Positions 5,813 through 44,570 of a DNA stretch of 64,000 nucleotides are shown here, one piece after another. Within the stretch, counting starts at the first letter, position 1. Every line of letters begins with the position of its first letter. Origin of the DNA: Cyanophora paradoxa CCMP329 (taxonomy: Eukaryota; Plantae; Glaucophyta); the NCBI GenBank assembly GCA_004431415.1, contig QPMI01000209.1, positions 95,406-159,405 on the forward strand, given 5' to 3'. Below the pieces are notes generated by a model that worked only from the letters and a program-made list of their open reading frames with translations, ran no database searches and was not told the DNA's origin. Both the position numbers and the translations under genes were made by a program.

Positions 5813-6938
5813 TGGACACTTGTTAGCTCTAAAGCGACTTGGAGGCCTAGGGCTCGCGTGGACTAGAGGCCTACAGCGCACTCTGTCTCAAGGAACTGCG
5901 CGCCCGTCGTCGCCCCGGCGACCGACGTCGACGGCGGCATCGGCGTGCTGCTCAGCGACAGTTTGCCTGATGCTGCCGCTCTGCTGGGGTGCGAGTAGGT
6001 GGATGCGGTCAGTCGCACAGGCCGAAAAGCAGCCGCTGTTATCACAGGCTAGCAGGCGGAATGGCGGCTATCGATTCGAAGTTGAACGGCTTGAGAAGAA
6101 CGTACCCCCATGAGCCGCACCTGGATCGGCGCTCTCTTGGGCTCTAGCTCTCGTTAGCGTTCCCCTCAATTGCGAGCTTCGACGACTTCCAGGTGAACCC
6201 GCATATGTATAGTTCTCCAGCTGCAGATGCACCCGACGCGAGCGCCTTGCACAACTGTAACCCGCCCCCGTTCCTTCCCCCAACATCGACCTCCTCCCCC
6301 TCGAGCTCCGCCAAAGCTCCAAGCACCCGGTCGCGGCGGCACCGTCGCGCGCGGGACCGTCGGACCCGCGAAAACAAATTAAGCTCCGAGGCCTCTCTCT
6401 CGCGTCGCAGCTGGTAGCTCTCGAGTCTCGAGGTTGCTTAAAGCTTGTGGTGCCCCGCCCGGGTAGACCGATCGGAGTTTTCGGCGGCACCAGCTAGCCG
6501 TCATGCAGGGCTAGCTTCTGTGGCTGTGCGCCAGCGCTCAGCGGCTAGCCGCGGCACCGGTGTCTGCAAGCATTGAAGCTGCGGTCGCCCCGCAGCTTCT
6601 GGTCCGACGGTCTCTACATCTAGATCATTGCTGAGCCGCTAGGCCTAGGCTAGATCAATTTCAGTGCAGCTATCGGCTATCCAAGCGCTTCTAGATCTCG
6701 CCAGCAGCGAGTTGCTCTGCGTGACGGCCGCGCATCTACACAGGTGCCACTTAGCCAAGCGTTTCCGCGGCGAGCATCGCAGCCTCACGCAGCTGGGGCG
6801 AACAAGTCGACAAGAAGCCGTCGGGGGCGACGACGAGCTAGCGAGCGCTGCTGAGCGCATGCGCAGCGTTGCTGCGTGCGCCAGAATGGAGAGCCGCAGC
6901 AGAGCGATGTGCTTGGGCGTATACAGAAGCAGATAACG

Positions 6939-12900: not shown

Positions 12901-15900
12901 TGTAACGCCCGGAGTCACTCTTTCGTTGCATTCCGCCGCATCTGATGCCGCGCAGCTTCACGACGGCGCTGCTCCGCGGGACGTTCGGTCGACTCGCCGC
13001 TCCGGTGGCCAACGGCTGGATCCTCACGTTCTCCCTGTCCGAGGACACGGGCCCCGGCCGCCTCGAATTCACGCCAGCCGCCACGCAGCCCGTTCTCTAC
13101 TGGGCCATCGGTGCGCCTCGTGTCGCGCGGTGAAACGTGCGCCCCTCTGACCGCCGCGCAGGCGTGCCGGACGGGGCGAACCTGACGTGCCCGAACGTGA
13201 CGACCGCGCAAGGCAGGAAGTTCAACTGCACGATCACGGCGCTGCGCGGCGGCGCGCCCGTGACCGTCCTCCCGAACGCCATCCGAGGCGTGGTCGCGAA
13301 CAGCCTGGCGTCGGCGGACGCCGCCATCGCGCCCTGGCCGCACGCCTCGACGACCTTCTCGCTGCCGTTCCTCGTCGCGAGCCAGCCGGCGCGCGTTCTG
13401 CCCGCAAACACGACGGTTCGCGCGTACGGCACGGCTGCGGCGACGATCACGGGTGCAGGCGGCGCTTTGATCCCCGTGGCGCCGGTGAACGTGAGCGTCG
13501 CGTTCGAGCCGGACCGCACGAGCAGCGTCTCCTGCTTCCCCCTCTACTTCGACAAGTCGGCCAGCCCGCTGTGCACCTTCATCGCGCGCCGCAGCAACAT
13601 TGTCGTCCACTCCTCCCTCGTCCTTTCGCCGGGCACCGCCGGGCCCCTTGCAGTCCTGTCGTACGACCCGGCCGCCGTGGCGTACGGGAGTTGGACCTTC
13701 GACTTCGTCGTCGTGCCGCTGCCGCTGGGAGGGCAGGCGCGCGCCGTCGTCTACTCGAACCGGACCGCCGACGGAGCGCAGACCTTCCTCGCCGACTTTG
13801 CGCTGACGGCCGCCGGTGATGCCGCCGCCCCCGCCCCCGTTGGACTTCGTCTCACTCGCGACGCCCTCGCAGACGAGCCGACGGACGTGCGCGTCGAATT
13901 CCAGAATCCTCTCGCCCCGGGACCCGTCTTCAACGCCACCTCCACCATACAGGTCACGCTCTTCTTCCATCCCGAGTATTCGGACAACGCCCTGATACCG
14001 GCGCGCAGATGACGGTCACGCCTCTGAAAAACGGGACCCGCATCTACGCGCTGAACAGCTCCATCAGGTCCGCCTCCTGGCCGATTCTTCTGGTTGGTTT
14101 TGCTGATTTCTCGGCCCAGCTTCACGACGCTCCTGCGGGGCGAGTTCGGGAAGCTGACGGCGCCCGTCGGCAACTCGTGGGTCCTGACTTTCACGCTCTC
14201 GGACGAGACGGGCCCCGGGAGACTCGACTTTACGCCCCCCGCCACGCAGCCCGTTATCTACTGGGCCATCGGTGCGTGGCGAAACAGAGCGAAACGGCGA
14301 CCCGCCGGCTCTGAACCACTGCGCAGGCGTCCCCGACGCGGCGGACCTGCAGTGCCCCGGGGAGCCCACGGCCGAGAACTCCAAGTTCAACTGCACCATC
14401 ACGGCGCTGCGCGCGGGCCAGCCCGTCTCCGTCCTGCCCAGCTTCATCCGCGGCATCGCGTCGAACAGCCTGGCGTCGGCGGACGCCGCCATCGCGCCGT
14501 GGCCGCACGCCTCGCCGACCTTCTCGCTGCCGTTCCTCGTCGCGAGCCGTCCGTCTCCGACTGGGGACCCGCTCCTCCGCGCGTACGGCACGGCTGCGGC
14601 AACCATCGCGGGCACCGGAGGCGTGCCGATCCCCGTGGCGCCGGTGAACGTGAGCGTCGCGTTCGAGCCGGACCGCACGAGCAGCGTCTCCTGCTTCCCC
14701 CTCTACTTCGACTCGAGCGCCACGACGCGCTGCACGTTCGTGCCCAGGCGCAACGGCATCGTCGTGCAGACGTCGGTGCCGCTGGTGCCGTCGACGGCTG
14801 GCCCGATGGCCGTGGACTGGGTTGACGGCTCCGCGACGGGCTTCGGAAGCGACCTGCTCGAGTTCACGGCGGCCGTGCTGCCGATCGGCGGCCCCAGCAA
14901 CGCCACCGTCTCGGCCATCGCCTGGGCAAACAAGACGCTGCCGTGCGACACGTCGCTCTGGGCCGGCCTCGTCCGGCGTTCCCTGCTGCAGAGCCCCACG
15001 AACGCCTCCGCGGAGAACTGCACGTCGGCGAACGCCACGGAGCCGTGCCTGGACCCGGGCGCGACGCCCTCGCCCTCGCCGTCTCCGTCGCCGACGCCGA
15101 CGCCGGTGCCGCTCTGCCCGGCGCTCGTCCAGGTCAACAAGTCCCTCGCCGAGTTCGGCGTCATCACCGCCGACGAGCCGACCGCCGTGCAAGTCGACTA
15201 CCTCTCGCCCAAGTTCTCGGGGCCCGTCTACGTTGCCGAGACCGCCATCGCCGTGCGTCTCCGTCTCGCGCCCGCGCCCGTGCAGCGCCGACAGCTGACG
15301 GCCCCGCAGGTCTTCGTGACGCCGCTGGTGGAGAACGGGACGGTGATCTACGCGCTGAACACCTCCGTCTCGTTCGCCACGGTCGGCCTCAACGCGACCT
15401 TCGGCACGCTGGCCGCGCCCGCCGCCAACGGCTGGCTCCTCGACCTCTGGCTCCCCGAGAGCACGGGCCCCAGCGCCCTCGAGTTCCAGCCGCCCTCTGT
15501 CGCCCCGCTCCCGTACTACGTGATCGGCAACGCCGACGGGGGCCAGATCCGGTGCCCGGCGGGCCCCTTCTACGTGAACGCGACCTTCAACTGCAGCTTC
15601 GAGGCGACGCGCAACGGCAGCGACGTGCACCTCCACGTGACCAGCGTCCGCCCGAGCGTCGCGGAGAGCCTCGCCTCGGCGCTCACGCCGCTCGCGACCT
15701 CGGCCTGGCCGCACGTCTCCACGGCCTTCGACGTGACGATGACCGTCGCCGCCGAGCCGCGGGCGCCGCGGGACAGCTCGCGGCCGGCGTACGGCATCGT
15801 GGGCGGGAGCCTGGCGGCGTCGGACGCGCGGGGGAGGCCCGTCCCGCTCGTGCCCGTGGACGTCGAGCTCGTCTTCGACGCCGACACGACGAGCCAGCTC

Positions 15901-18900
15901 GCGTGCAGCCCGGCGGGCGTCTTCGACGCGACGAGCACCGCCAACTGCACCTTCGTAGCCCGCCGCCGCGGCATCCCCGTCCGCTCCGTCTTCCCGCTCA
16001 GCCTCAACGTCTCGGGCGCCATCGCGACGGACGCGCCGGCCGAGTACAACGCCTCCACCTGGACGTTCTCCTTCGTCCTCTCTCCGCTCACCATCTACGG
16101 CGGCGTCGGGCACCTCGCCGTCTACTCGTACCCCAGCCCGCCGGCCCCGCCGCCCGCCGCCGCCGCGGCCGCCGCCCCCAGCGCCGCCGCCGCGAACTCG
16201 ACGGGGGCGAACGGGACGACGCCCTCGCCCTCGCCCTCGCCCTCGCCGACGCCGACGCCGCTGCCGATCGTCCGGCCGCCCCCGATCCTCCTCGCCAACA
16301 TCACGATCATCGTTGCCGCCATCCCCGACGCCTCGTCGTCCTTCGTGCGCCCCGCCCCGCCCCGCCCCGCCGCCCAGCCGCGCACGGCTGACGCGGGGCG
16401 CGGCAGGAGTGCGCGACGAACCTCACGTGGGTCGGCTCGCCCGTCCTCTGCGACTTCACGCCGCGCCTCGAGGGCGAGTCCGTGTACGCGCGGCACGGCT
16501 ACCTCAACGTCGACTGGCCCTACATGCGGCCCGACCACCTGGCGGCCATGTACGGGGTGAACTACGCGACGACCTTCACCCGCGTCTCGATCGCCGCCGG
16601 CACGCTCGCCGACTCGGCCCCGGTGAACTGCACGGGCCTCTGCACCTTCACGCTGACGGCGCCCGGGCGGGGCGCCATCGCGGCGCTCGACTTCATGGTC
16701 GTGGGGCGGCCCTCGAAGGCGGTCTCGACCATCGCGTGCCCCGTGAACGAGCTCGCCGGCAACCAGTCCGCCGCCTGCACGTTCCGCTCCGTCTCGCTCG
16801 TGCAGGGCGAGCCGGTCGTGACCGACCTGCACGCCCTCCGCGTCCTCGCCACGCCCGTCATGCTCGGCACCGCCTGGCTCGAGCCGCTGCCGCCCGCGCG
16901 CGACACGGGCGAGTGGGACGGGCGCTACTCGGACACGTTCACGCTGTGGGTGACCGCCGGCACGAACGTCGCCGGCACGCTCAACGTCGCCGTCCACCCG
17001 CTCGCGAACCGCGGCGCCGGCTCGCCGCTGCCGGCGGCGGCCAGCGTCTCGTTCTTCATCATCGGGACGAACATCGCGTCGGTGCAGCCGCAGGCGGCCA
17101 ACGTGCGCGGCGGGATCGCCGTCTCCGTCAGCGGCCTCGGCTTCGTGCTCCCGCCCGAGCCGCTCGTGCTGACCTTCTGCGGCGTCGAGGCGCGCGTGAC
17201 GAGCCGCTCGACGACGACGCTCATCGCCATCCTCCCGCCGCTCCCGGCGGAGTACATGGAGGCCGGCCGCCGCTCCTGCGACGTCGTTGTCACCCTCACG
17301 CAGCGGCCCGCCGCCGCCCCCGTCGTCCTCAAGGACGGGTACACCTACAACGTGCCCCCCGTCGCCGCCGCCGAGCGCCTCGAGTCCTTCTACCCCCTCC
17401 CTCGGGAGATCGTCCTGAACGGCAGCGCCAGCGTCGGTGCGGCGCCCTCCCCTCCGCCCCTTTCCTCCCTCCTCCTCCTCCTCCCGCCTCACTTCTTACG
17501 GGGCAGACCCGGACGCGAGCGCCGGGGCGAGGAACCGTGGCCTGCGCTTCAAGTGGGCGGTGGTGGAGCGGCCGGACCCCGACGGGGAGGTCGTCCTCTT
17601 CGGCTCCAGCGAGGAGGTCGCCCTCGTCGGCCCTCTCCAGGTCGCCGGCTTCTACGCCTTCGAGCTCACCGTCACCGACGCCGGTGCCCCCGTCCTTTCT
17701 CCACCGCCCGCGCCCCCGCCCCTCTCCTCTTCTGAGGGCGCGCAGGCGGGGAGACCTCGACGGTGGGCATGAACTTCACCGCCGAGTTCCTCCCCGGTGC
17801 GCCCCCGCCGGCCCCGCCCCGCCCGGGCGGCGGGCGCGGCTGAGCCGCCGGGGGCGCAGAGCTGGACCTGGTGATCCGGCTGGAGACGGAGTTCGACCCG
17901 TTCAAGGAGCAGTACGACAACGACGAGGCCTTCCGCGACTCGATCTGGATGGCGACGGCGGAGGAGTTCGGGGTGGCCGTGAGCCGCATCCAGGGCATCG
18001 GCCTCGCCCAGGGCTCCGTCCTCCTCAGCGTCCGCCCCGCCCCCGCCCCCGCCCGCCCCCGCCGCGTTGGGCTCTGACGGGGCCGGCGCGGCGCGCGCAG
18101 ACGACGATCTCGGCCGACAACCTCGTCGACGCCGCCTCGCTCGTGGCGCTCCCGCGGACCTACACCGGTGCGCGCGGTGCGAGCCGCGGGGGCCGGCGGG
18201 GCTGAGGGCGGCGCCCGCGCGCAGGCGTGGCGTACAACCGGGTGCTGGGCGGGGGCGTCTCCTCGTCGGTCATCTCGTCGCGGACGCGGCAGCGGACCGT
18301 GAACCAGGCGCCCGTGGCGAACATCACGGTGCGGTGCAGGTCGAGCCCGCTGCCCGACGGGAGCTACAGCGTGCGGGCCTCGGCGTGCACGCTGGACGGC
18401 AACGGGAGCTTCGACCCGGACGGCTACGTCGGGATCTTCACGTGGAGCCTCATCCAGACGCCCGAGTCGAACTGCCCGGTGTTCCGGGGGACGAAGAACT
18501 GGGTGGACGGGCGCTCCAAGGGGACGCTGCTGATGATCTTCGGGGAGCAGCAGGGCGTCTGCGTCGTCGCCCTCTCCGTCCTCGACAACAACGTCCGCCC
18601 GCCCGCCCCGCCCCTCCGCCCCCGCGCCGCCCGCCCTCTCTCTGAGCCGCGCGTGCGCAGAACCTGCGGAGCGCGCGGCAGGCGAACGTGACGCTGCGGA
18701 TGGAGGGCGTCCTCGTCAACAGCCCGCCCGAGTTCGAGTACGACGCCCAGGCACGCCCCACCCCGCGCGCGCGCGCCGCGATCCCGCCGGGCCTCCTTCT
18801 CCGCCGCCGCCGCCGCCGCCGCTCACGGGCCGCGCTTCGCCGCCGCAGGTGACGGTGACGGTGAGCCTGGAGGACGGGGCGTACGACAACTCGACGACGG

Positions 18901-21900
18901 TGGAGCTGACGGCGATCGCCGCCGACCCGGACGGCCTTCTCGCCTCGGCCGCCTGGTCCTACCTCGACGGGCCCATCAACGCGACCCTCCGGCCCCTCCT
19001 CGCCGTCAACGCCTCGGCCGGGGCCGAGCCGGTGCAGCGCACGCCGGTGACGTCGCGGGCGCGCGTCGTCGGCCTCGGGACGTGGCGCTTCGAGGTGGCG
19101 GCGACGGACGACCTGGGCCTCACCACGCGCAACGTGACGGCGCTGACCGTGCGGCTCGGGCCCCCGCCCCCCGTCACCGACTCGATCGACCCCGAGGTCG
19201 CCCGCCGCGTCGCCATCTCCGTGCGCCCGCCCCGCTCCGCCCTCCGGTCTCCGGGCGCGTCTCGACGCCCTCACACCCGCGCGCGCCCCCCAGCTGGCGG
19301 CGCTGTCGCTCTTCTTCATCGTGGTGAACATCGTGGGGAACGCCGTCGAGTCGTGCATGCAGACGTGGGCGGGGGCGGTGCCGACGCGGGTCGTGAAGAC
19401 GGCGGCGACGGCGGGGAGCGTCTTCGCCATCGCCCAGTTCCAGATGCTAGCCGCCCTCGGCCTCCTCACCAACCAGGACATGGTCCGCCGCACCCCGGTC
19501 GTCCCCCTCGCCCCCCACGGCTATCTCAAGCCAGCCCGCCCCGCGCAGCCGGCCTCGTTCCACGCCTTCTGCGACGGCATCTACCCGTACCTCCTGCAGG
19601 GCCGGAGCCCCGGTGCCGGCCCCGCCCGCCCGCCCCCTCTCTTTCGCGCCCCGCGCCCCCCCGCTCACAGCCCCCGCCCGCAGACGGCCTGACGGTGCCG
19701 ACGAACGTGCGGGCGCCGATGGTGCAAGCGCGCCGCTCGCTCCTCTACGCCCGCGAGCGCGACGTCGTCGCCGGCTTCAAGGTCCCGCCTTCCCCTCCCG
19801 CCGCCCGCCCCGCCCGCCGCGCCCCGCCTCAAAGGCGCGCAGTCGGCGCTGCTCTACTCCGGCATCGCGATGGGCTTCGTCTCCCTCGTGCACGTCGCCG
19901 CCTCCTGGTTCTTCCGCCGCGCCTGCGGCCGCAAGACCCGCCTCCGCGGCGCCCTCGCCGCCCCCCGCCCCGAGCTCCTCGTCTTCCTCGCCGCCTTCGT
20001 GCGCCCGCCCGCCCCCCCGCCCGCCCGCCCGTCCGCCTCGCCGGCCTGACGACCGCGCGCGCAGCGACCGCTGGCGATCGCGGCGGCGGCCGTCGTGCGC
20101 TTCGAGAGCGGCGGCTGGCGCGTCTTTGCGGGGGCCTACCTGGTCCGCCCCCCGCCCTCCCGCTCGCCGCCCGCCCCCCCCCGCCGCCAACGGGACGCCC
20201 GCCTCGGGGCGCGCAGGCGGTGGCCGGCGTCTTGGCCTTCGTGGTGCTGCAGGCCGTCCTCGTCTTCTTCCTCTGGCACGTCGGCGCCGTCGTCTTCGAC
20301 GTCAACCCCCACCGGTCCGCCCGCCCCCGCCCGCCGGCCCCGCCGCCCCCGCCCCGCCTCACGCACCGCACCCGCCAGCGCCATGCTGCGCTTCTCCAAG
20401 CCGCCCCCGGCGAAGCCCGGCGCCGGCGACGACGCCGGCGCCGAGAAGAAGAAGAAGAAGGGCGAGGGCGAGAAGACGCTGGCGGCGTCCCCGCCGGAGC
20501 CGGCGCGGGCGCCCCCGCCGCAGCCGCCCCCGCCCTCGTCCCTCATCGAGCGCATGTTCCAGTTCTCTCAGACCGTCCGCCCCGCCCCTCCGGCCCCGCC
20601 CCGCGGCTCGGCCTGAGGGCCGGGGGCAGACGCGGAAGAAGGTCGTCAAGGGCCGCTGGATCGTCGACCGCCACCTCGGCGAGCGCGCGCACTGTGCGCC
20701 CCCCTGCCCCGCCCCGCCCCGCCCGGTAGGGACGCCCCTCACACGGGGCCGGGCGCGCAGGGTTCGCCGACGGCTTCGCGCCCATCTTCTCGCCCTTCAA
20801 GGGTGCGCCCCCGCCCGCCCGCCGGCCCCCGCGGGGGCAAGCGAGCGGGGCGCGCAGAGTCGCGCTCGGGCTTCCGCTCGTACGAGCTCTTCCGCGCCGC
20901 CGCCTGGGCCGCCATCCTCGCCGTCTTCGCCCGTGCGCGCGCCGGCCCCCGGCCCCCGCCCCGGCGCCGGCGCCGCCCTCAACGGGGGCGGGGGGCAGGG
21001 AACGCGGGGACGGCCCAGACGGAGGGCTTCAACATCGCCAAGGGGCAGGCCTTCGCCGAAGTCTTCTTCCTGACCACCATCGAGCTCCTTGAGATCGGGT
21101 CCGCCCCGCCCCGCCCCGCCCCGCCCCGCCCCGCGCCCCCCGCCCCTCTGGCCCGGCTGACTGGCGGGGGCGGGGCAGCGTGCAGCTCTTCTTCCAGCCG
21201 CAGATCTCGTGGTGGGGCACCGCGCTCGGCCTCCACTGGTCCGCCCCGCCCCCCGCCCCCCGCCCCTTTGACAGCGGCGCGCTGACGGGGCGGCGGGGGC
21301 GGGGGCGGGGGCAGCTCGCTCTGCTTCGTGGGGATCTTCGCGGCGCTGGCGTGCGCCATCCTGCGCCTCGGGTGGCCCTTCGACGTCGGGCGCGCCCTCT
21401 TCCTCCTCGCCCTCGCCGCCCTCCTCCCCGTCCTGCTCGACCAGGCCATCGACGCCGCCGCCGTCCTCCTCGTCCGCCCCGCCCCGCCCCGCCCCTCCCC
21501 CCTCTTCTCCCCTCTGACTGGGCCGCACGCAGAGCATCGCGAGCAAGGTGAGGCGGCGGGTGGAGCGGAGGCGGCAGGGGCGGATGGGCGTCATCGCCCC
21601 CAACTCGCCCCTCGCCAAGGGCCCCGACGGGGCGCCGGCGGCCGCGCACGCCGACGAGAGCGACGACGCTACGACGGAGGAGAGCGAGGACGAGGCTGCG
21701 GGCGGCGGCCCCGCCTGGATCGCCGCCCGCCGCTACGCCCCGTCCCTCGCCCCCGCCGCCCCCGCCCTCGCCCCCGCCCTCGCCCTCGCCGGCGCCGGCG
21801 GCCCGCAGCCGTCCCTCTCCCTCCTCTCGGACTTCTTGACGAGGCAGGACGGCGGGGCGCGGGCGCCGGGGGCGCGGCGCGGCTCGACGCACTCCCAGGC

Positions 21901-23274
21901 GTCGGACACCGGCTCGGGCGCCTCCTGGATCGCCGCCGGCGGCGCCTGGCACCGCGTCGGGGAGCCCCCGGCCGCCGCCGCCGCCGCCGCCGGCGTGGGG
22001 CGGGCGGAGCGGGGCGGGCTGGTGGCGGTGGAGGAGCGGCCGGCGGGGCGCAGCGCCTCGTTCGCGGGGCGCCGGCGCGGGCGGTGCCCATCGCCGGGGC
22101 CCTCGCCCTCTCCAACTCGGGCGTCGCCAACCTGCCCGCCTCCGTCCTCGTCGCCGCCTTCGGGGCCCCCGCCCGGCCCGCCGCCCCCGCGCGGGCCCCG
22201 GCCCGCAGGGCCCCCTCAACCCGCGAGGGCCCCCGCCCCGCCCCCGCCGGGGTCCCCCGCCGGCCCCGCGCCGGCCCCGCCGCCGCCTCCGCCGGGGCTG
22301 GCCCTCCGGGGGCGCCGGGGCGGGCGGCCGCCTCGGCCTCGCCGCGGCGGCGGGGCTCGCTCTCCCTCGCCCCGCGCCCCGCCTCCTTCGGCAGCCTCCC
22401 GCCCGCGCCCGCGCCCGCGGCGACCTCGGCCCCGGCGCCGCAGCGGGCCTCGCCGGCGGGGAGCTCGGCCGGGAGCGCGGGGCGGCGCGGGCGGCCTCTC
22501 TGGTGTCCCTCCCCGCAGCCCCCGCGCCCCTCTTCGACGCCTCCCTCCTCGGCGCCTTCGACGACCCGCCCCCGCCCGCTCCCGCCGCCGCCGCCGCCGC
22601 CTCCGGGGCGGCCGGGGCGGTCAGCGTGCAGGTCGTGAAGCCGGCCTCGGCGGCGGGGCTCCCGGCGCGGCCGCTGCCTCCTCCGGCGCCTCCTCGACCG
22701 CCTCCTCCGCCGCGCCCAGGCGGCGGCGCTCCAGGGGCGCCCTCCCCGCGCCGCCCGCCGCCGGCCCCGCGCCCGTCGCGCTGCAGCCCCGCGCGCGCTC
22801 CCGCCCTGCCCCCGGCCGGCCCCGAGCCGCCCCGCCCGCCGCCGCCGCCGCCGCGGCCTCGGAGGAGGACCACGACTACGACTTCAACGAGCGCCTCGAG
22901 GCACTCCTCGGGGCCGCCTCTGACCCCCCGGCGCAGGCGCCGGCGGCGCCCCCACCGCCCCGCTCCACCTCCAGCGCCTCACACGCCTCCCGCTCCTCGG
23001 GCTCCCGGCCCGGGACCCGCCCGCCCACGCCTTGGCCCCGCCGGCGGCCGCCGCTGGGGCCCCCTCCCGCCCTCGCTCCGGCTCGGTCGCCTCCTACGCC
23101 TCGCACTCCTCGCTCCCCTCGAGCGCCCCCCGGGCCAGCGCGCGCTCGCCGGCGCAGGTCGCCCGGAGGGACCCCCCGCCGCGGGCGGCGCCCCTCGCCG
23201 CGGAGGAGGACCCCGAGGCCGCCGCGGAGCACAAGCGCCTGGCGGACCTCTTCCTCGGCGGCCCCCCCGAGTAG
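6939..23274 (+). CDS. Giant multi-exon cell-surface receptor-like protein A (LamG, Cys Ig-like repeats, IPT/TIG, PKD, SEA, PKD, multi-pass TM, low-complexity tail)
   Basis: Signal-like ARLAIISALLALLGLAPACLAQ (about 7230-7295). LamG-like MLEAWIKFD...GDWHHVMLTL...LRVW (7525-8115). Repeats PDRTSSVSC...CTFxxRR. IPT IASVQPQAANVRGGIAVSVSGLGF (about 17070). PKD LNGSAS...FKW...FELTVTD and LDGNGSFDPDG..FTW. SEA GSVLLS (about 18010). Hydrophobic helices at 19290-21540. Many NxS/T sequons. Start and tail frame approximate. Confidence 0.8.
13297..14712 (+). repeat. Near-identical exonic modules in gene A
   Basis: 13297-13553 versus 14462-14712, with a perfect match over the IPVAPVNVSVAFEPDRTSSVSCFPLYFD codons. 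Confidence 0.9.
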
Positions 23275-25066
23275 CTGCCAGGCCGCTCGCGATTCGCGCT
23301 GTGGATAGCACAAAATGCATTAGATCTGTAGCTACACAACTAGCAGCACATCTGTACGTACATGCGGTCTACGCCGGGCGACAATGAGTACGGTAGGCTA
23401 TGAATATTGTGGATAAAGTTCGAGTTCGCTCCGAGGCTCTGTCGATGTCGTCGCCGAGTCGAGTGTGGCCCTCAGCTGCAGCCTGGGCCTCAGGGCCTTA
23501 ATTATATAAGCTTGCCCGAATTAATATTCGCCGAGTCGAAGGCCCGGCCGTTCCGCCACGATCATGAGTGTCCAAGAGCGAGCGCACTCTGTCTAGGCTA
23601 GTTATCATGATGGCAGTCTGCTGCCGCCAGTGCAAACAGTGCCAAACACTGCAACTTGGGCAAAGCAGTGCGAACTTGAAATCGGCGAGCGTTCCTCAAG
23701 GCTTCGCGATCGGCGATCGAGCGACTCGGCGAGCTGGCGGCGCCTGGCGCTACTAGGCTAGGGCCCGCCGCCGAGCCGAGGGCCGGGGGCATATTTGGGA
23801 GGGACTGGATTCACTGGAATGCCCAACTCGCACCCCCAAGGTTGCAGGCTTGCAGCGATTACTGCGGCCGGTACCGGGTACTACCGGCGCGGCATGCGCA
23901 GCTGCAGGAAGTACTAAGACCCTCGAATTGGAATATTAATGGTACATGCACATGTATATATATGTACCCGTCTGCCGGCCCAGCCGCTGAGCATGCGCAG
24001 CGGTACCGTAGTACCAGCGGCGCGCCGGCGCCCGGGCCGGCCCGGCCGCTGCAGCTGAGCATGAGCTCGAGCCGCATGCACATGCGCACGTACTGCGGCG
24101 CGTGCAGTGCGCAGCTGTGCGCTCAGTGAGCGGGTCGACCGTATACGTACCGGTCCGTACGCCGACGGTACGCGTCCGACGGTCGGCGGCGTCGCCTGGA
24201 AGTTGCTGGAACAGGTTGGAAGGCCCTGCAGGCTGCATCGCATCGATATCATTCGATTCGCATGCGCAGCCTGAGCTGCAGGCTGCGGCTGCTGCACTCT
24301 GCCAGGCTGGCACTGCTCCGAGCCTGCTCGGTGGTCAGCCGCTGAGCCGTCTCAGCGCCGATCGCGACTCCCGGCCCGCTGCTAGTGCTTCGCAGTGTTC
24401 GCATGGGCAGTACTAGTGCGCATGCGCACTCACTGAGTCACTGCAGCGGTGATACTTGGTAGACAGCGAGGATCCGCTCCCCGGGCCCCCATGCACTGCG
24501 GCAGGCCGCAGCTGTCCCCCTAGTAGTGATCCTCATGCATCCGAGCGCGTGCAGCCGAGTCTGGCCGAGCTTGAGCGGCGCGCGCGCGCGCGCTAGCGCT
24601 GGCCTCCTCAGGGCCTAGGCCTAGGCCTCGTCCGATCATCTTAATTGCAAGCTAGCGCTAGGCAGCAAGCGCGCTGCAGCTGAGCTTTGCCAAAACGTGT
24701 GGTGGCTTGGCGAGCTCTGCGACCGCAGCCCCTATCGAGCCGTGCGCGTGGGATGCAGCGCTCGCACTTCCGTCAGTACTAGTGCCTGCAGCTGCAGAAC
24801 AGCACGTGAGCGCGCCAGGGGAGCAGGCGCGCTGTCTGGAGTTCGAAGAATGCCTCATCCATATGCATACGCGTTCGCTTGGAGATAGCATCCGACTGCT
24901 GGGGCGCGCGGACGCCGGCTCGCGCGGGGCGACGATGAAGCCGAGCGTCCGCCGGCGCCGGAGCAGCTGCAGGCGCCAGCTGGGCGCGACCGGCGCAATT
25001 GCAAGTGGCTCACGGCGAGAGCTCGAGGCATCCGCCTGTGCCGCGCTCCGGCGGGGTCAGGCCTGC

Positions 25067-28000
25067 ATGCGCGTCTTCATACTTGTCGCCGTGTGCATCG
25101 CCTGGCTTCCACGCTACGAAGGTGCGCCCCTAGACAGCGCTCCCGCGCGCGCATGCGATATTTACGTGCAAATATATATCGATATCTACTAAAACTTAAT
25201 CAACGTTGCTGCTCGCGCAGCGGTCATTCTGCCGACGACCGGCGTGCACCTGAACGACCTCAACCCCAAAGCCCTCAGCCTCGCGGGCGGCTACATCGCG
25301 CCGCAGCCCGCCGCCGAGCTCGACTGGAGCAGCGCCACGATGCAACTCACGGTCGAGCTCTGGTTCGAATTCGCGCTCGCTGTACGCTTCGGTGGTCCTG
25401 GTGCTCGGCGACCGACGCGCCCGACCGCAGGCTCAAGCCGAGTGCGGAGTCGGCGAATGCATCGGACGTGCGGGGCATCTTCGTCCGGGGGGACCCGGGG
25501 ACTTCGGATGTAGATTTCGCCCTCGTGCGCCCCCGCCCTCCCTCTGCTCTTACCCCCCCCCCTCCCCCCCTCCCCCCCCTCCCCCCCCCCCGCCCCCCCC
25601 CGCAACCCTGCCCAACCTCCGACCTTCGTATTCCCATGGCCGCCCCTGTTCGAATTCTCTTCCCCCGCTTCCCATCCCCCTAGGCCTTGCCTCTCCAAGC
25701 TTAAGCCGTAAAATTGCCTCCATAAACCGCTGCACATCATCCGCTCCAACGCGGCTATAGCTACTCCTATCCTCGTCGAAACTATAATTGCCCAGCTGCA
25801 GGCACGCGCGCGCGCGCGCAACGGACAGCTGACGCGATGCTCATCTCGCAGATCGTGACTGCCGGGGCGCTGCGTGTGGAGCGGGCGCGAGGAACCGTGC
25901 AAACTGAGCCAGTTCTGGTCGCTTCCAAGGTGATTTCGGCTATTATCACATGTCGCATCCAGCCTTATCCCCTGCTGACTCGATGAGCCGCACGCGTGCG
26001 CTGCAGTGGACGCACGTGGCGGTGTGCTTCCTCGCAGAAGAGACGAATGCGTCCGCCTCGATTTACGTGGACGGCACGCTGCGCAAGACGGGACCCCTGC
26101 CAGCTGCGGGCGGTGCTTGGACGGGGCCGCCAGTCATCGGCGCGGCGCCCTTTGCGGGCTCATTGGCAGCCGCGCGGGCGTTCACGGGTGAGTTTGGATC
26201 TCTTAACTCTGTGCCGGAGGCGATCTTTGCGTTTACCGGACGGGGGCACCTTTGCGATCGCGAGCAGGTCTCATCGACGAAGTCCGAGTCTGGGGGCGGT
26301 TACTTGCTGCGGACGAGCTTTCCTCTATTGTTCACGGAACATTTGCAATTAATTTCTCATCAGCAAACTCAACATCCGAATCCGCAAACTCAACATCCGA
26401 ATCCGCAATGCGCCTTTTCTACAGGTTGATTTCGGATTTACTGCTTCGCGCTTCTGTACATGTGGCAGCGGCTGAAACCAACCCGCTGTGCAGCTTCGAC
26501 CAGGATCCGGACACAGCGGAGTTTACGACGAGAGACGTGAGTCCCGCGGCTGCACATCCAGCGACGTTCTACGATGCCGCTGGATCGGCGCTCAGCACAC
26601 CGTCGCCCTTGGTGCAGCGCACCGTGCAGAGCGCGACCCCGGACAGGACTTCCTCCGTCTCCTGCCCCGCATACGCAGCGATCCCCGGGGACACAATACG
26701 GTGAGCCGTACGCGTCTGTTCCGCTTGCGCGATTGCGACCTCGGTATTGCTTACGTGCTGTTTCTCGCGCCTTAGTTGCACCGTAGCCATGCGACGCTCC
26801 AACTCCGCTGTCACTTCCGAGGCCTCCTGGCTGCGCGTCGCCGTGTCCTCTTCCACCACCGTCCGCGCCACGCTCGGGCCCCTCTCTCCGGCAGAACCGA
26901 GTGCCAGGGCGGGTCTCGTTGTGTTTGACGTGACTTTCCCAGCCTCGAATCCCTCCACCGGTTCGCCTACGGATACTGGAGCGGCTTGTGACAGATCATG
27001 GGCTATATAGAAACTCAATTAAAATTGCCGTGCAGGTCTTTTGGAGTTCGCCGTCTTAGTTCCGGCCGGCCAGGTGAGCTCGGATATTAATGCTTCAGAT
27101 CAAGATCTCAATGCTTCAAGTTGGGTCTTTCTCAATGCTTGCGCAGTTGGGAGCTTCGGTCCGGACGTTCATGGCAGAGGCCACCACGTCGACTGCGTTC
27201 AACAGCTCCTACATTCAGTGGCAGACGCACTGGGGGTACTCGACCCCCTTCCCGCCGACAGCGCGGGGCGAGGTCCTGTATGGCACCTTCTACCCTCGAA
27301 GGGGCCTGAACGTCCCGTACATGATTCCCCGGTAGGCTTCTTCTGCCACTGGGAGCTTCTCAATTATTATTCGCAGACGTCTCACCCGCTCTCCTCCAGC
27401 TCTTCGATCGTCGTAAACCCGAGCCGGACAACCGGGAACGTCAGTTTTGAGTGGTGGCCGCCGGCAACGGCCTTCTGGTACACGGAGAGTCTCCGGCCGG
27501 ACTACGACTCCGCTTTCCCTTTCACCATCACGTTTCACGGGGACAGCGAGATTGAGCCGACGTTGTGGGACAAGATCTGTGTGACTAGAAGGTTGGGAAA
27601 CAGTGATGACGGCACAGCCATTCGGCCGAGACTGACTCCCGGTGCCAATTCCAGGTTCTCGTTTCGAGTGGCAATTGGGAACAGGTCTCTAGATACCCCT
27701 GCCTACCCCTTCTCCGTCTGCGGTGTGCCATGCTTTAAAAATTGCATTCAGACCAACAGCTGCTAACTCGCAATCGATGAAATGCGCAGCCGGACTGCTT
27801 GACTACGCGTGCGCCCTCCTAACTTTTTCTGTCAACGTTGGCCACATTCAAGCTCACTTGGTTTTGCGTGACCGCACCGCAGCTGGTACAATAAGTACAA
27901 CGCAAGCAGGACGATGACTTTCCGATTCATTAATGTGCAGAAACTTCTTTTTCGTTCCCTTCGGAAATAATCGTTGCACAATCTTTGTAAGTTTTACTTG

Positions 28001-31000
28001 ACGTGCTTTCTGTAAAACAGTTCTGGGAATCCGCCCTCCTCTACTTGCCGCGGTACGGATATCAATGTTCTCGTTCATCGCCCATACGTCGCGCTCTCTC
28101 GAATCTCGACCTCAGGGAAAACACCGGGAGTGCAGTTCCGGAACTCGGGAATGTGCGCGGCCGCGGCCCTCGACATGATTCCCTTCCTAAAACAGCTTCT
28201 TAATTCGCAGCTAACTCGTGATGGTAGCCTCTACTTTAATGAATCCAAGGTCTTGAAATGCCCCCCTCGCGCTCGAATGTCCCCCTCTCGCTCGCATGTT
28301 CTCGCTCATCGATATCTCTCGATCGAAATCGGCATAGACGCACTACCACATCGTCTACGTCGACCCCGACATTTTGCAGACATTCGTGAGCCATGAGCTT
28401 TCAGTTACGCTCAAGATTCGTTTCTCTGAACCCTCGTATCCGCTGTAAATACCTAGCCCTACACCGATCCTGGTGCGCGCCTGCATAAATATCGAGATTC
28501 GCGATATCGAGATCCGCGATATCGAGATTCGCGATCGAGAGAAACATATATTTGTTTATACTAAAGGAGTTCTTTTCTGAAATCATGATCAGGATACAAG
28601 CGAAGATTGGGAGAATTGTGAGCTTTCGAACCTCTGCATTCCTCGCTCGATCTCTTCGGTTTTAGACTGAGTATCCGTGACAAATTAATACAGGGACCCG
28701 TCGTGGGGATACATGCAAAGCTGCCAATGTACCATGAGATGGGTTGGTGGTTGGCACATGTGCAGAATCGGGTTCAATGCGGTTCGCGGCGCCGCTCTTG
28801 TATGTTAGATCGCGATCGCTAACCGTTGGCTAAACACTCTCTCAACGCAGCTTAAAGTGTGCTTCCCTATATTCGGCACCACATGGTGTATTTACCTCGT
28901 TTATCCGTACTTCTTCTGTGACTGGTTTGTGCACCTTCTCGATTCTGCTTTCGCGTGCATTGTAATCGCGTCCGTGGTCAGGCATCTCCCGCACGGAGAC
29001 TCTAACAGAACAGCAACAATGGACCTCCGTGCGCGGGCCGCACTTGTTTGTGCCGGGCACACGTGCACGGCAGCTAATCAGATTTCTTGTCGAAGGCGAT
29101 ACGCCTTTTACATTTCAAACCGGGAGGTATTCGCGCTTTTGGCTTTTCCCGCGCCTCCAGTTGCATTCATGCCAGTGGGCCTACTTTGCAGCTACAACTT
29201 TGCAAGCGGGCGGAAGATTGCCACTAGTTGGATCACGACATGCAACGAGATCAACTGCACAGGAGGTGCTCCATGAAATTCGCGATTGCCTTTCCTCATG
29301 ATCGCCTCTCTGCTGAGTAATTCTCATTTACAGGGGGTTTGTCGAACTCAACGGTTTCTTCCTCATTCATGATATGCTCTTAAACATTAAAGCCCCTCAT
29401 CGTCGACTTTGCGCAGTTTTATGACAACAATCAGCTAGTCTTAAATTATGCGGAAGCCACGTTTCAGCCAGATTGGCCTCAAGTAACAGACACTTGCGAC
29501 TGCAATGCAATATGTTGTGGCTCTGCTGCTATGCCCTCCAAGATCCAGCTCTCGATTCTCGGGGATTCCAACCCAGCCAACTGGATCTCAAACGCGCTAC
29601 CCGACCTCCCTGACGCCACCAGCATTATAGATTGTGGCAGAGACTCTGTTCCCGTGAGCCGGCGCTTTACATTCTCCGCGGCCTATTGATATTCCGCAAT
29701 CCCTCGCGATCGCCTTGCGATTGACACTTTGGTTTCAGAGCGGTGTGGTCATGAACTGCACGTACGTCGGTCTATACGGGAAGCTTCCGATCTTCTATCG
29801 GTTCTGGTAATTGCTTTTCTTTGCCGTAAGATCGCAATAGCGCCAATATGGCCGCCCACCCTCTTGGCACTTGCGCGCTCGCAGGGACATGTCCGTTGTG
29901 AGCATCGAGTACACCCGCGGCACGATCAGCGACATCACGCCCTTCGATCCCCCCGCGACGACCTACTTCGTCTACACCAAGAACTGCACGTTTTCGCTGC
30001 GGTTGCATACCACCATCGAGATGAGCGGAGCGGGTACTTTGAGGGTGCGCCTCGCCATGAAGTCTACTCCAAGCGTGGAGTCTGAGAGCAGTCTTGCAGT
30101 TCTACGGAAGGAACGGCATTATTCTCGGCTCGACGGATTTCACTGTCTACGGTGCTCAGTTCCTTCTAATTTATTTACTCGTTGTTGTATTCATTGTTGT
30201 TGTTTTCGAACCCCTCCGGCAGCGTTCGCTGACGACAGCAGTTTCATGGACTGCGGGACAGTCACTGTGGTGGCCACGGGCACGGCTGTCATCTGCTTCG
30301 TCTATCCACACTTCGAAGGGCAGCGCCTCGCCACCATTGCGTCAATGTTCACCACTGGCGTGTCGGGTACGGCCGTCAACGGCTCCGCGCTACCCAGAGA
30401 TTCCCTCGGCAGTGCGGCTCTTCCCGCGGACACATCGGACGCTCTACGAGTCGTCATTACCGCCGGCACCGTCTCTGGCACTATGACTGTAACTGCTGCG
30501 CCGTGCACAAACTCGGTTTCACTCTACGTCACTAGTGCGTTCTGCTCTACATCTCGCAGCTGGGCTCTTCGAACTGCCGATTCGCTAATCAGTATCGCAG
30601 CCGACCCCGACGCGATTAGCTTCGCGCACAATCGCGTGGACCCATTTTGGTTCCGCATGGGCACAGACGTTCAGATTCGCGCCACGATGGCCGCCACGCT
30701 ACGCTCGGAAACGGTGTACCCCAACGTTGCGGGGCTTCGGCTCGCCGCCAGCGGCAGCCTCGTCCTGGCGACCATAAGCGATGTCAACCATACAGCTCCG
30801 GCGCTGCCCTCGATGACAGTGACTTTGGCCACCAGCCCCGACATCTGTCTCACTTGCACGGGGCCTGGAACCCTCACGATTCGGAACGCCGCGGGGCAGT
30901 TCCTCCACAGTTTGTCTGTCCTCGTGTACAGTGAGTTATCCAGTTACTTGCGAAGTCCGAGTCGTTTTCCGCCTGCTACATCGCTAACTTCCCTGCCCAG

Positions 31001-34000
31001 CAACTCCGGGGGCCGCAGTACTTAATTGCCCGAACACTCCGATTCCAGCGCAACCGTTCAACTGCACCGCCACCTTCTACGACGTCCTCGACGGCACTCC
31101 GCTGTACGTCAACTTGGATGACGTGTCGGCGACTGCGGCAGGCGGCTCGGCGAGCATAGTGCCTCCGAGCGATGGACTCGTGCAGTCGCGGATCACTGTT
31201 ACTGTCCACCCCACGACGGACCCTCCCCCCGGATTCAGCGGCAATGTCGCGGTGCAGGCGGTGCTGAAGAGCGGCCAGCTCCTCGGGACAGCCCTCGTGC
31301 CGATCGTCTACGTCGCGGACAACAGCAGCAGCGTCGAGTGCGCCAAGCCGCAGGTTGCATTGGCGGGTACTATCGAGTGCACCCTCACGCCGCGGCGTAT
31401 CAGCGAGCTCGTGTGGACGGATGCGGCCACCATCGGGTTTGACGGAGACGGGGCCCTCGCCCCGGTAGCGGGAACGCTGTCTCCGACGACCGGACCGGCT
31501 CAGTCCTTTTCGTTCCAAGTGCGTGGTCAGTCGGGACGGCTGCTGACAGGTCCGTCGGTTGCAATGGCGCTCTCGTCCGGCGTGTCGATTGCGAATGCGA
31601 CCATCATCGTGTTCACATCCCCTGACGGGACGAGCAGTGCGGTGCGCCGCTTGGCATCATACGTCTTGCAATTTCCTCATACATCTTGCAATTTCCTCAT
31701 ATGAATGCGACTGATCGACAACGTGCTCGGACAGGTGTGCCCTGATCGTGTGTGGGCGGGCGAGTCCACGATCTGCACGTTCTATGCTCGCAAGGTGCTC
31801 CGCATTCCTTGCCACGGCCCCGGACTGCGTGCCCAGAGCATCACTTAAAGTACCGCAGAATTCGCTTGTAATCTGGGCAAACCTGGCGGACATCTCGTCG
31901 ACCGGCGTCGCGAGCGTGAAGGGCGCGTCGCTCATGTCCGGCTACGCGGTGGAAGGTCAATTTGACATCTACACCACGTCCAACCCGTCGCCCGATTACT
32001 CGGGCCCGGGGAGCGTGGACCTCAGATCTTCCTCGAATCTTCAGCTCGCTCTTGGCTCGATCGCCGTTCTCGGTGCGGCTGACAAGCGAAACCTGCAAGC
32101 TCTGCCGTCCTGCGACCGCAGCTCACAGCCGTTTTGCTTGCAGACGCGCCTTCATACGACGGGAGTTCTCTTTCCTGCCCAGCGACTCCGATGGTTGCGC
32201 TCGTACCGTTCAATTGCACGTACGTCCCCAAGCGAGTGGGGTTCGCGATTTACGGCATCCCAGAGAATGTTTCGGTTAACGCGACGAACGCACACGCCAC
32301 CGTTGTGGAAGCTGCTGGCGATTTCGGTCAGCGGTTCACAGTGACAGTCGTGGCAGATCAGAATCCTGTCATCGGCGGCGGAAGCGCTATCCAGGTCTTT
32401 GCGTGGCTGGCGGGCACCGACGAGCGACTCTCGGAGGCAGAGGCCGTTGTTGCCTATGTGGCCGACTCGTCCAGCAGCGTCGATTGTGGCGCTCAGCAAC
32501 TGGCGCTGTCGAATTCTGTCGATTGCTCGCTCACTCCGCGACGCCTGGGCGAGCTGGTGTGGGCTCTGGCATCCACGATCGGATTCGACGGAGATGGGGC
32601 GCTTGCTCCAGTGGCTGGGACGCTGCTTCCAGCGAGCGGGCCTGCACAGAAGTTCTCGTTTCAGTTGGTGGGGGAGTCCGGCCGCATCTTGACGGGCAAC
32701 TCGACGGCTATGGCCCTCTCGAACGGCGAATCGGCTGCTAACACGACAGTTCTCGTGTACGGGCCGCCGGATGCCACAAGCGCCATCGTACGAGCACACC
32801 TGCCTCTAAGAGTTTAATCTAAGGTATAGCTACGCCTCTGTGCCTATCTTACTGCATTTCGCTTCAGACCTGCGACAACCCGGTCGCAATGTGGGCGGGC
32901 TCCATATCGAACTGCGTTTTCGAACCGAAGATGGTAAATGCTTCCGAAGTATTGTCATTTTTGACAATGCAGAGATGCTCGCTTTCGTCGCATACAGAAT
33001 TCGACGACAATCTGGGCGTATCTCAATGACGTGACTTTCGTTGTCAGCGGGAGCATCAAAGGCTTCGTGCGCACTACAATGGACGGACATCAGACGAGCG
33101 GGAGGTTCACTGTCGTCACCACAAATGTTCCGGACGCTACGTACACGGGACCAGGCGCTGTCGCAGTGGTCGATCCTGTAACTAGCGTCACTCTGGCATC
33201 CTATTCTGTCATCGTTATTGGTTCGCATCACCTTGCATCGCTTTTCGGGTTGATTTGATCGCGGCCGTTCCCTAACAATGCTTTCTGTTAGACAATCCCG
33301 ACAGCGCGCTTGCCACATCGGTGATCGAATGCCCGACGGTTCACCAGACGGCGCTTGTTGCCTTCAACTGCATCTTCTATCCCAAGACTGGCGATGTAGC
33401 CGTTTTTGGTATCGCATCAAGCGTCACTGCGTACTCCGCCAACTCTACCGCAATCGTTGCCGACCCACCGTCTACCGTCGGAACTCAGTTCACTATCACC
33501 GTTACTGCGGCGGCAGCCCCGGTTTCCGGCGGCGGAAGCAGCATCGTGATCGTGGCGTACCTTCTCTCTCTGAACGGCTCGTCGACGGGAATGGCACTCG
33601 CTCGCAGTACTGTACCAATCGTGTACATCGCCGACGAGAGCAGCAGCCTCGCGTGCGGCGTCGCGCAGCTCATCCTGACGGCCGTCGTCGACTGCACGCT
33701 GACGCCGCGGCGACTGGGCGAGCTCGTGTGGGCGGACGCGGCGACCATCGGGTTCATCGGCGACGGGGCGCTGGCGCCGGTGGCGGGGTCGCTGCAGCCG
33801 GGGGCGGGGCCGGCGCAGTCGTTTGTGTTCCAGATGATTGCAGAGCCCGCGCGGCTGCTGACGGGCCCGTCCGTTGCGATGGCGCTGTCCGCTGGGGCCT
33901 CGGTGGTGAATGCAAGTGTGCTCGTGTACGGCGCACCCGACAACACGTCGATGGCGGTGCCCTCCCCCGCACTTTGATTCGCTTTACGCATACTGAGCCA

Positions 34001-37000
34001 GCTTGACCGATCGGTTCGATCTTGCAGGCTTGCGATCAGAACATTTGGGCTGGAGACTCTGCGTTGTGTTCGTTCATTCCGCGTCTGGTGCGCCAAACAG
34101 TGTTCGGCCAAATCAAACACAATTATCTTCGAATCTTCGAATGAATTCGAAATTAAATCGTCAGACAGTATTCAAATAAAATAGGGTGGATTTATATGAA
34201 CTATCGATCGCGCGACTTCGAATGAAATTGAATCGCATGTCCGTCGGCTAAGTGAGCATTTGCAGGGCTCGGAGGTAATCTGGGCTCTGCTGGACGACGT
34301 AATCGCGCTTCCCTTTGCGAGCGTCAAGGCTTCTAGCTTCATGACTGGTTACGCGACGGGGGGCAACATAACTTTCGATACGACCGCCTTCCCCATGGCC
34401 GACCACACGGGCACGGGTGGCGTTGAGTTCCGGTCTAGGTCTGCTACGGAACAGCTGCTAACCACAGGATATACTGTCGTGCAAGGTGCTGCGAATTGTT
34501 TGAGCGGCTCTCTTTCGCTTCTTTTCGTATACGTAGCTTACCCGTGTCACATACGCGTGCGCTAGATGTGCCGATCAACATGGACGATGGGTGCTCGCTG
34601 GTTTGTCCAAACACGCAACAGACGGCGCTAGTTCCCTTCAACTGCACCTTCGTTCCCAAGCGCGCCGGCTTCGTCATCTACGGCCTCGCCGACAACGTGA
34701 CCGCCAACGCAACGAACGCCGACGCGGTCGTCTTTGAGCCCGCCGGCTCCCTCGCGACCCAATTCACCATCACCGTCACGGCGTGGGCAACGCCCGTGAC
34801 GAACGGCAGCAGCGCGATCCGCGTGCTCGCGTGGCTCCCGGGGATGGAGACGCAGCTCGCGGAGGCCGGCAGCGCGATCGTGTACATTGCCGACGAGAGC
34901 AGCAGCCTCGCGTGCGGCGTCGCGCAGCTCATCCTGACGGCCGTCGTCGACTGCACGCTGACGCCGCGGCGACTGGGCGAGCTCGTGTGGGCGGACGCGG
35001 CGACCATCGGGTTCAGCGGCGACGGGGCGCTGTCGCCGGTGGCGGGGTCGCTGCAGCCGGGGGCGGGGCCGGCGCAGTCGTTTGTGTTCCAGATGATTGC
35101 AGAGCCCGGGCGGCTGCTGACGGGCCCGTCCGTTGCGATGGCGTTGTCGGTTTCGGCTTCGATTGCAAACGCAAGCGTTTTAGTGTATGGACCTCCCGAC
35201 AACTCAAGCTCTCTCGTGCGGTCATTTTTTCTCGTGCGATCATGCACGTGCTCATACATCGTACAGACGTGCCCCGATCGTGTGTGGGCAGGTCAGCTTG
35301 CTGATTGCCTGTTTATTCCGCGCTTGGTGCGCATGCGCTTTCGTTCTTCAATTTGTTGGCTTTATATTTTAAAGAAAAGCGTCGGGGCAGTTTATTATTC
35401 CAAAAGCTGATTTGCTGACGCTGATGCGTCGTCCTAGAATGAGTTCAACATCTGGGCTCGTCTTGATGACACGGCTGTATCTCTTCACAACTTAGTCCTG
35501 GGCGCTGCTTTTCCAGCAAGCCTCACGGGCTACGTCCCAATGCTCGGCTACGCCACATCTGGTCAATTGATTGTAAACACGACGGCCGAGCCATCTGCAG
35601 TATTTACTGGCCCTGGCCTCGTTGAAGTCGTACTGCAAAGCAGCCCGGGGAATCCGCTTGTTGTGCTTGCTTCGGCATCAATCCACGTCATGGGTTCGTT
35701 TGATTTGGCTGCATTCACCTTTCTTATTTCATCCTTACGCTGTAATCATGCGCTGTACGTGTTCGGCCTATCCAGACATTCCACAGAATGCGACGGACAA
35801 GTCGACGCTCTCGTGCCCCTCGCACCAGCTTCCAGCCTTGGTTCCCTTCAACTGCACCTTCGTTCCCAAGCGTGCCGGCTTCGTCATCTACGGCCTCGCC
35901 GACAACGTGACCGCCAACTCAACGAACGCCGACGCGGTCTTCTTTGAGCCCGCCGGCTCCCTCGCGACCCAGTTCACCATCACCGTCACGGCGTGGGCAA
36001 CGCCCGTGACGAACGGCAGCAGCGCGATCCGCGTGCTCGCGTGGCTCCCGGGGATGGAGACGCAGCTCGCGGAGGCCGGCAGCGCGATCGTGTACATTGC
36101 CGACGAGAGCAGCAGCCTCGCGTGCGGCGTCGCGCAGCTCATCCTGACGGCCGTCGTCGACTGCACGCTGACGCCGCGGCGACTGGGCGAGCTCGTGTGG
36201 GCGGACGCGGCGACCATCGGGTTCATCGGCGACGGGGCGCTGTCGCCGGTGGCGGGGTCGCTGCAGCCGGGGGCGGGGCCGGCGCAGTCGTTTGTGTTCC
36301 AGATGATTGCAGAGCCCGGGCGGCTGCTGACGGGCCCTTCGGTGGCAGTCGCGCTGTCAAGTAACGAATCCATCGCCAACTTTTCGATCACCGTGTATGG
36401 CGATCCGGACGCGACTAGCTCTCTGGTGCATCTGCGTGTCCCGCTCAAGAACTTATCAATGCTCACCCTTATACAGATTTGTTCTTCGGAGCCCGTGTGG
36501 GCTTCGAATTTCACAGCCTGCACGCTGATCCCTCGCCTGGTGCGCACGTACTGTTCCTGTGCATATGCCAGATCAACGAGCTGAGTCGGGGTCATCCGCA
36601 GGCCTCTCAGCGCATCTTTGTTCTGATGGATGATCTCTTCGTTTCTTGGGGGGGCAGCGTCCTCCAGGTGGAATCGCCGAGCGGGATTCTCCCTGAGCCC
36701 GTGTTTTCCGTCTCCACGTATTCGTTCCCAACGTCGAGATGTGAGTGCAAATAAAATTGTCGTCGTGTCGGGGCACTCAACCGTGACCTGATCGGAACGC
36801 AGACACTGGGCCCGGCGAGGTCACGGTGGCCTTCCGGGCAAACGCGTCCGATGTTGTCGCATCTGCCTCGATAACAGTAATCGGTGCTCTCGAGTGACGC
36901 CGCGCGTCCGGGATCCCCTAAACTGACTGATCGCTGACGATGTTCATTTCGGGAAATGGTTAGATTTGCCGCGCGACAGCTCGTCTAGCCTCGTCTGCTC

Positions 37001-44526: not shown

Positions 44527-44570
44527 GAATTTTTGTCTAGTGCAGCTGGCTCCCTAGGCCTCTTTGCCCC

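Follow-up and report, generated by a model that had tools for sequence, protein, structure and literature searches.

Uniform 11-base palindromic scars in Cyanophora paradoxa intergenic DNA: probable hairpin-type excision footprints of a cut-and-paste transposon

Between positions 23429 and 24616 of the 64-kb stretch of Cyanophora paradoxa DNA analyzed here (the window), the sequence follows a rule in which a triplet NNN is succeeded by C, by the reverse complement of NNN, by G and by NNN again, giving an 11-mer with an arm length of 3. What kind of event writes such a pattern? By reading of the sequence, this spacer follows the 3' end of a large + strand gene and precedes the start of the next, and no Pfam families were found in its ORFs. 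The species is probably haploid, and the paper describing its genome is silent on palindromes (PMC6704402).

An earlier note on this DNA had listed 13 copies in the spacer, all of which were recovered, and a 14th was added at 24004. These 14 perfect copies compare with a mean of 0.08 and a maximum of 2 in 500 dinucleotide shuffles, and the remaining 15 spacer pairs give 2 matches in total, so that the count over all 16 pairs proposed in the note singles out C/G. Across the window there are 47 C/G 11-mers vs. 5–7 from Markov models of order 1 to 5. The next-ranked pairs, C/C (16) and G/G (14), are close to the GC-driven expectation, and the reversed order, G then C, occurs in only 3 copies. Forty-two of the 47 copies lie in five spacers comprising 9,859 bases, with 0.23 expected (the figures for C-centered and G-centered palindromes spaced 4 apart are likewise 42 vs. 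0.23), while the remaining 54 kb holds 5 vs. 6.3 expected. The statement that all copies are intergenic is thus accurate for 42, with the five in genes at chance level. Arm lengths of 4 and 5 yield zero C/G copies in intergenic DNA, and the enrichment is limited to C/G among the spacer pairs and to 3 among the arm lengths. Relative to a bare triplet the 11-mer is a net gain of 8 bases (+8). A form without spacer bases, the 9-mer NNN-rc(NNN)-NNN (+6), had been overlooked; with 153 copies vs. 6.4 expected in intergenic DNA it is about 3 times commoner than the +8 form. The sites along the window are as follows (features are unstranded unless a strand is given).

23429–24616: scar-dense spacer between two + strand genes, with 14 11-mers and about 22 interleaved spacer-less +6 events
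23429, 23451, 23488, 23528, 23722, 23750, 23982: 11-mer starts in this spacer
24004 (TAC), 24174, 24299, 24337, 24430, 24493, 24606: further 11-mer starts in this spacer
339–511: first spacer, with two 11-mers (339, 501)
6355–6612: spacer between divergent genes, with three 11-mers (6355, 6536, 6602)
44671–45058: spacer between convergent genes, with 11-mers at 44671 (doubtful, within a C run) and 45048
51400–56160: second scar-rich spacer, with 21 perfect 11-mers, zero of them in the young MITE/SINE block 52229–53985

The window has a GC content of 67%, for which the earlier chance rate of about one copy per 65 kb is too low. Even the 5–7 copies that such GC-rich DNA does yield fall far short of what is seen, and with 14 copies vs. 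0.08 locally it is confirmed that the pattern is real and far above chance. The 11-mers are also not an artefact of assembly, since all sampled words of 23280–25250 are present in 14 runs from 2012, 2019 and 2024 (12 of the 14 may be of the source strain), and the pattern is reproduced by independent short-read contigs. An origin by chance or misassembly is therefore scarcely conceivable.

The net event is visible in tandem duplicates, where one copy carries the 11-mer and the other the bare triplet.

54798–55120, + strand: tandem duplicate, with 11-mers at 54835, 54918 and 54947 (copy A) vs. bare triplets at 55011, 55086 and 55107 (copy B)
53985–54062, + strand: short tandem duplicate, with an 11-mer at 53999 vs. 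a bare triplet at 54039
51955–52060, + strand: fifth before/after pair, triplet TTA, bare at 51965 and expanded at 52020
51946–51966: three stacked +6 events in a run, adjoining the TTA pair of 51955–52060

In alignment, all five pairs differ by exactly +8, triplet vs. 11-mer, and the duplicated unit in these paralogue pairs is 3 bp. The copies of 54798–55120 are separated by three triplet/11-mer changes, one irregular 8-base indel and a single substitution; the irregular indel (54989–54996), located where a TA-MITE terminus ends, can be read as a +6 scar combined with a duplication of 2 bases. Four of the five pairs fall in stretches reproduced by independent contigs of 2012–2024. Contigs of the 2012, 2019 and two 2024 runs cover 51400–52256, 53960–54871, 54891–55039 and 55059 onward with zero differences at the pair sites, so that both states of the pairs are real. 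The comparison of contigs and reads between cultures, which the earlier note had suggested as a way to catch alternative alleles, covered 51400–56200; over its covered stretches the cultures from 2012 to 2024 are identical and no ongoing activity was caught. No element-occupied allele of an 11-mer site was found in the window or in the contigs and reads over 51400–56200, and no loose ends at 11-mers appear among the read matches listed for that region.

The pairs alone do not give the direction of change. Expansion follows from the fact that 42 copies cannot be ancestral chance, together with the absence of 11-mers from young repeats and an excess of copies with one mismatch. The young high-copy repeats at 52229–53985, a block of high read depth, contain 0 11-mers vs. 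21 in the neighboring sequence (binomial p ~2e-5). About 28 one-mismatch 11-mers are present beyond expectation, corresponding to ~0.06 substitutions per site, which means that the scars decay slowly. We thus observe a net change from NNN to the 11-mer of fixed size, fixed C/G polarity and independence of the flanks, in copies that are eroded by point mutation and missing from young repeats. A regulatory or structural motif of promoters and terminators, maintained by selection, would fit the fact that the +8 form is strongly confined to spacers. This explanation seems highly improbable given that the 42 intergenic copies fall into 16 triplet classes with no common sequence, that one tandem copy has the motif and the other does not, that it decays by substitution, and that an Rfam search of the 64-kb window gave no match.

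The scale of the process is considerable. Collapsing 14 +8 and 22 +6 events removes 20.5% of 23429–24616, and collapsing both classes spacer by spacer removes 6–17% of each. The scar density is approximately one event per 54 bases, or ~180 events in 9.9 kb, and scars make up ~13–20% of spacer bases, with the +6 class supplying most. The proposal that this intergenic DNA was written de novo thus holds insofar as scars form a large share of it, but what is seen is a spacer modified over ~13–20% of its bases, mostly by +6 events.

Where do the C and G come from? Only 9 of the 42 intergenic 11-mers have C at −1 together with G at +1, and C-NNN-G flanks are missing from three of the five pairs, so the two bases must come from outside the site. 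This rules out an Ac-type geometry acting on a 5-bp C-NNN-G target, for which the flanks are too variable (9/42), and local template switching fails for the same reason: a polymerase template-switch insertion would have variable length and a local template, whereas here the gain is fixed at +8 and the spacer bases are not in the flanks. The simplest origin of the C and G is the terminal bases of an element that once lay between two copies of the triplet.

We consider it probable that the 11-mers are hairpin-type excision footprints of a cut-and-paste transposon with a 3-bp target site duplication (TSD) and C...G ends; that they are uniform excision scars, if the variant with immediate removal discussed below is counted in, is very likely. 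Insertion of the element would duplicate NNN. On excision, the transposase would nick the non-transferred strand one base inside each element end, and the freed 3'-OH would attack the opposite strand at the junction, sealing the flank as a hairpin tipped by the element's first C. A host nuclease would then open the hairpins into palindromic tails, as is known for hAT, MULE and RAG, and the tails would anneal and have their gaps filled in to leave the 11-mer. Annealing is expected since a 3-bp TSD makes the tails complementary, both being parts of the inverted triplet. By enumeration, 10 of the 16 combinations of tail lengths 0–3 yield the 11-mer, including all 6 with microhomology, and the convergence of most opening positions on one product would account for its uniformity. 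Opening exactly 3 nt in, as the earlier note had it, does give the exact 11-mer by annealing on the TSD, but is sufficient rather than required.

Where tails join unannealed, rarer and longer products would be expected, and candidates of this kind are present.

23622–23633: candidate +9 sibling, two 2-nt palindromic tails in an unannealed join, with C and G retained
23652–23663: second candidate +9 sibling, a 3-nt tail plus a 1-nt tail
55127–55152: a +9 sibling and a canonical 11-mer with the same triplet, 15 bases apart

These three independent siblings of C/G polarity (23622, 23652, 55127) compare with ~0.2 expected and 0 in the G/C control, although the numbers are low and the comparison is post hoc. 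A similar +7 excess is seen in the spacer-less class, likewise in low post hoc numbers and partly due to nesting and duplicates. NNN-CG-NNN was considered as a further sibling product and discarded as non-specific, its 24 copies vs. 11.7 being paralleled by a raised GC control (29 vs. 17). The scars carry what opened flank hairpins leave behind, namely P-nucleotides that form perfect palindromes at either former end, and microhomology joins accompanied by rarer unannealed siblings (three, a small number). Perfect palindromes with a zero- or one-base loop are a residue of opened covalent hairpins (PMC5873905, PMC5499845). Two points count against the proposed excision pathway: a nick inside the element is without precedent for a flank-hairpin pathway in the literature we found, and the scar density would demand very many jumps.

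The +6 class could arise by the same chemistry with the nick placed exactly at the element border, probably by a second element. The ratio of +8 to +6 is 42:141 in spacers vs. 3:69 in two large gene bodies (p 2e-4); in annotated introns alone it is 1 vs. 18, which is not significant by itself (p 0.08), and the +6 excess in gene bodies may in part reflect in-frame tolerance of +6 in exons. The near absence of +8 from gene bodies, unlike +6, suggests two elements. A single enzyme picking its nick independently at each end is ruled out, as independent nicks would lead one to expect ~80 mixed-end products but 27 are seen, nesting by itself would supply 18, and roughly half of those seen represent duplicates, C/G runs or TA-type footprints. 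Triplet preferences and C at −1 are common to the two classes, which fits less well with two unrelated parents, and our reading is that two related elements lie behind +8 and +6. Many spacer-less 9-mers also occur in the introns of the minus-strand gene at 45.8–51.4 kb, and some apparently in its exons, whose reading frame a gain of 6 bases preserves. Stacked +6 arrays are also present in contigs from other loci (other MITE copies), which indicates that the grammar extends beyond the 64-kb window.

The mixed ends also bear on an element-free origin, in which a staggered break would be filled, an untemplated C added (Rev1- or TdT-like), and a miniature inverted triplication completed by self-copying or template switching. 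We regard this as decidedly unlikely, even though no element is seen in the window, +8 and +6 share site preferences and there is a mild in-register stacking excess (15-mers, 9 vs. 3.0), an excess too mild for self-expanding palindromes. Snap-back synthesis depends on a paired primer and a multi-base loop, and its templated inserts vary in length; here the loops are 0 or 1 base, the arms are always 3, and the spacer bases have no local template. Moreover, independent addition of C at each end would make mixed ends common, which is not observed.

If an element is responsible, to which known group would it belong? The 11-mer works like a flank-hairpin excision footprint, yet hAT, Transib, Harbinger and mariner each differ from it in a defining property. 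In Ac/Ds and other hAT elements, as here, palindromic P-nucleotides are centered at the former ends and joins use microhomology (PMC5873905), and a few footprints can dominate (PMC2921059). The hAT palindromes, however, center on the complement of the neighboring host base (PMC5873905), with an 8-bp TSD and varied footprints, whereas the 11-mer has a fixed C or G tip, is independent of the flanks, is built on a 3-bp unit and is the one dominant product; an Ac-type source would require every copy, rather than 9 of 42, to be flanked by C (−1) and G (+1). In hAT, Transib, RAG and MULE systems, one strand is nicked, the 3'-OH of the flank seals a hairpin and host enzymes open it (PMC5499845), and RAG1/Transib and MULE resemble the present case in this; their CAC ends would agree with the C...G predicted for the parent. 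The border nick of RAG/Transib, however, would produce the +6 class and not +8, leaving no element base at the tip; its TSD is 5 bp and that of MULEs is longer, whereas arm length 5 gives two spacer-less matches and none with C/G. Repair after Muta1 excision is mostly precise, unlike the uniform 11-mers. PIF/Harbinger elements target TAA/TTA and are mostly repaired precisely, and these triplets account for only 2 of the 42 intergenic 11-mers. Tc1/mariner footprints do place element-derived bases between duplicated target bases, but involve no hairpin, no inverted target copy and TA targets only, whereas the 11-mers span 16 triplet classes and contain the triplet in inverted form.

The likeliest source of the putative parent is the CACTA/EnSpm-Plavaka-Transib group, the CACTA label resting on geometry. 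EnSpm elements are defined by CAC...GTG ends and a 3-bp TSD, and PlavakaB has CATCA ends and a TSD of 2–3 bp (PMC12730594); En/Spm, Tam1, Tgm9, Tdv1 and ATENSPM3, along with PlavakaB (TSD 2 or 3), thus share C...G ends and a 3-bp TSD with the predicted parent, and the scar unit is exactly 3 bp. Accessible accounts describe CACTA footprints as small and heterogeneous, e.g., 0 and 4 bp for Tgm9 (PMC4015899) or “small rearrangements” (PMC3193017), in contrast to the uniform +8 seen here. The literature on CACTA hairpin footprints and Cyanophora transposons offered no account of the 11-mer pattern that we could find, nor did we find CACTA footprints described that form a uniform +8, with terminal C and G enclosing an inverted triplet, or that make up 13–20% of spacer DNA.

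Scans of the 64-kb window for inverted C...G ends flanked by a 3-bp duplication returned only chance-level matches plus one ambiguous 21-bp candidate, and no transposase, including the Tnp2-type DDE, was found among the window ORFs scanned. Of the earlier claims, the stereotyped +8 event is borne out by the pairs, the foreign C and G and the siblings, whereas a CACTA/EnSpm-like parent is a candidate to which the geometry of the scars points. Of the CAC...GTG ends that such a parent would have, the scars allow only the first C and the last G to be inferred. The 21-base candidate (51926–51946) has 6-bp inverted ends, CACTGT/ACAGTG, between two TTA and a V(D)J-type heptamer inside; it is ambiguous between a minimal CAC-ended element and a long palindromic tail. 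CACTG strings after TTA or AAT (51926–52031, 54229–54329) are ambiguous as element ends, as half-scars of ACA and TCA spell the same, and TA-flanked MITEs have the wrong TSD to be parents. Metagenome and viral collections gave no matches.

The many events without a resident parent raise the possibility of hit-and-run or host-driven removal, with the same chemistry but re-excision after gap filling or a domesticated, excision-only transposase. Besides the ~180 events in 9.9 kb, events exceed substitutions by ~3–4 to 1 in one duplicate. Nevertheless, ordinary cut-and-paste in a haploid leaves one scar per jump with a flat copy number, ATENSPM3 excises 0.92 times per transposition (PMC6668482), and no enzyme for it was found among the window ORFs; we therefore take this variant to be rather unlikely. 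In its broader form, a transposase-derived system would insert elements and at once remove them, or purge insertions, by cutting one base inside, acting as a programmed-like mutator. This is unlikely, but if true, DNA flanking genes would be rewritten as fast as by point mutation.

Under the preferred reading of transposon excision, the genome would preserve the traces of very many excisions with a readable cut geometry, and these predict base by base how a C...G transposase with a 3-bp TSD cleaves, i.e., with a flank hairpin and a nick one base inside the end. To our knowledge, cleavage by the CACTA group has not been reconstituted so far. Excision scars would then be a main mutation class beside genes (13–20% of spacer bases here), would explain why Cyanophora spacers are so rich in palindromes, a property that escapes repeat finders, and, being collapsible, could serve as a clock for dating duplicates. 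That footprints are a source of indels is known, ATENSPM3 in Arabidopsis being a major one once active (PMC6668482); we found no description of their uniformity, fixed tip base and scale. What the window contributes are five contig-checked pairs, the convergence of products with its siblings, the arguments that exclude Ac geometry and independently nicked ends, and the differing distribution of +8 and +6.

Other features of the window were noted in passing. Two very large intron-rich genes (7200–23273 and ~25000–44557) encode repeat-built, probably cell-surface proteins, with close relatives found only in Cyanophora; the second has PKD-like and TIG domains and is apparently split into several EukProt models. 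In protein searches with single exons, ORFs or database ids as queries, two EukProt Cyanophora paradoxa proteins (tig00000882 g5278 and g5279) match window exons at 100%. The minus-strand gene at 45.8–51.4 kb contains a duplicated exon (48028–48440 vs. 48814–49223), and the end of another minus-strand gene (56270–64000) resembles, by eye, a response-regulator receiver domain, as in a hybrid sensor kinase. TA-flanked MITE-like elements or ends with CCGTA or CTGTA starts (Tc1/mariner-pogo-like) lie at 52229–52413, 52724–52951, 53174–53768 and 53864–53986 and are multi-copy by read depth, and 15 strings of TA-CCG-TA type in spacers may be TA-MITE footprints. Two tRNA-like, poly(A)-tailed SINE-like inserts (52430–52672 and 53340–53660) are each flanked by direct repeats of ~12–13 bases; ARAGORN reports no tRNA in them, and the former reaches several hundred times single-copy depth. 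Finally, two copies of a 60-base sequence, each followed by long C runs, are found at 44570–44720 and 45102–45270.
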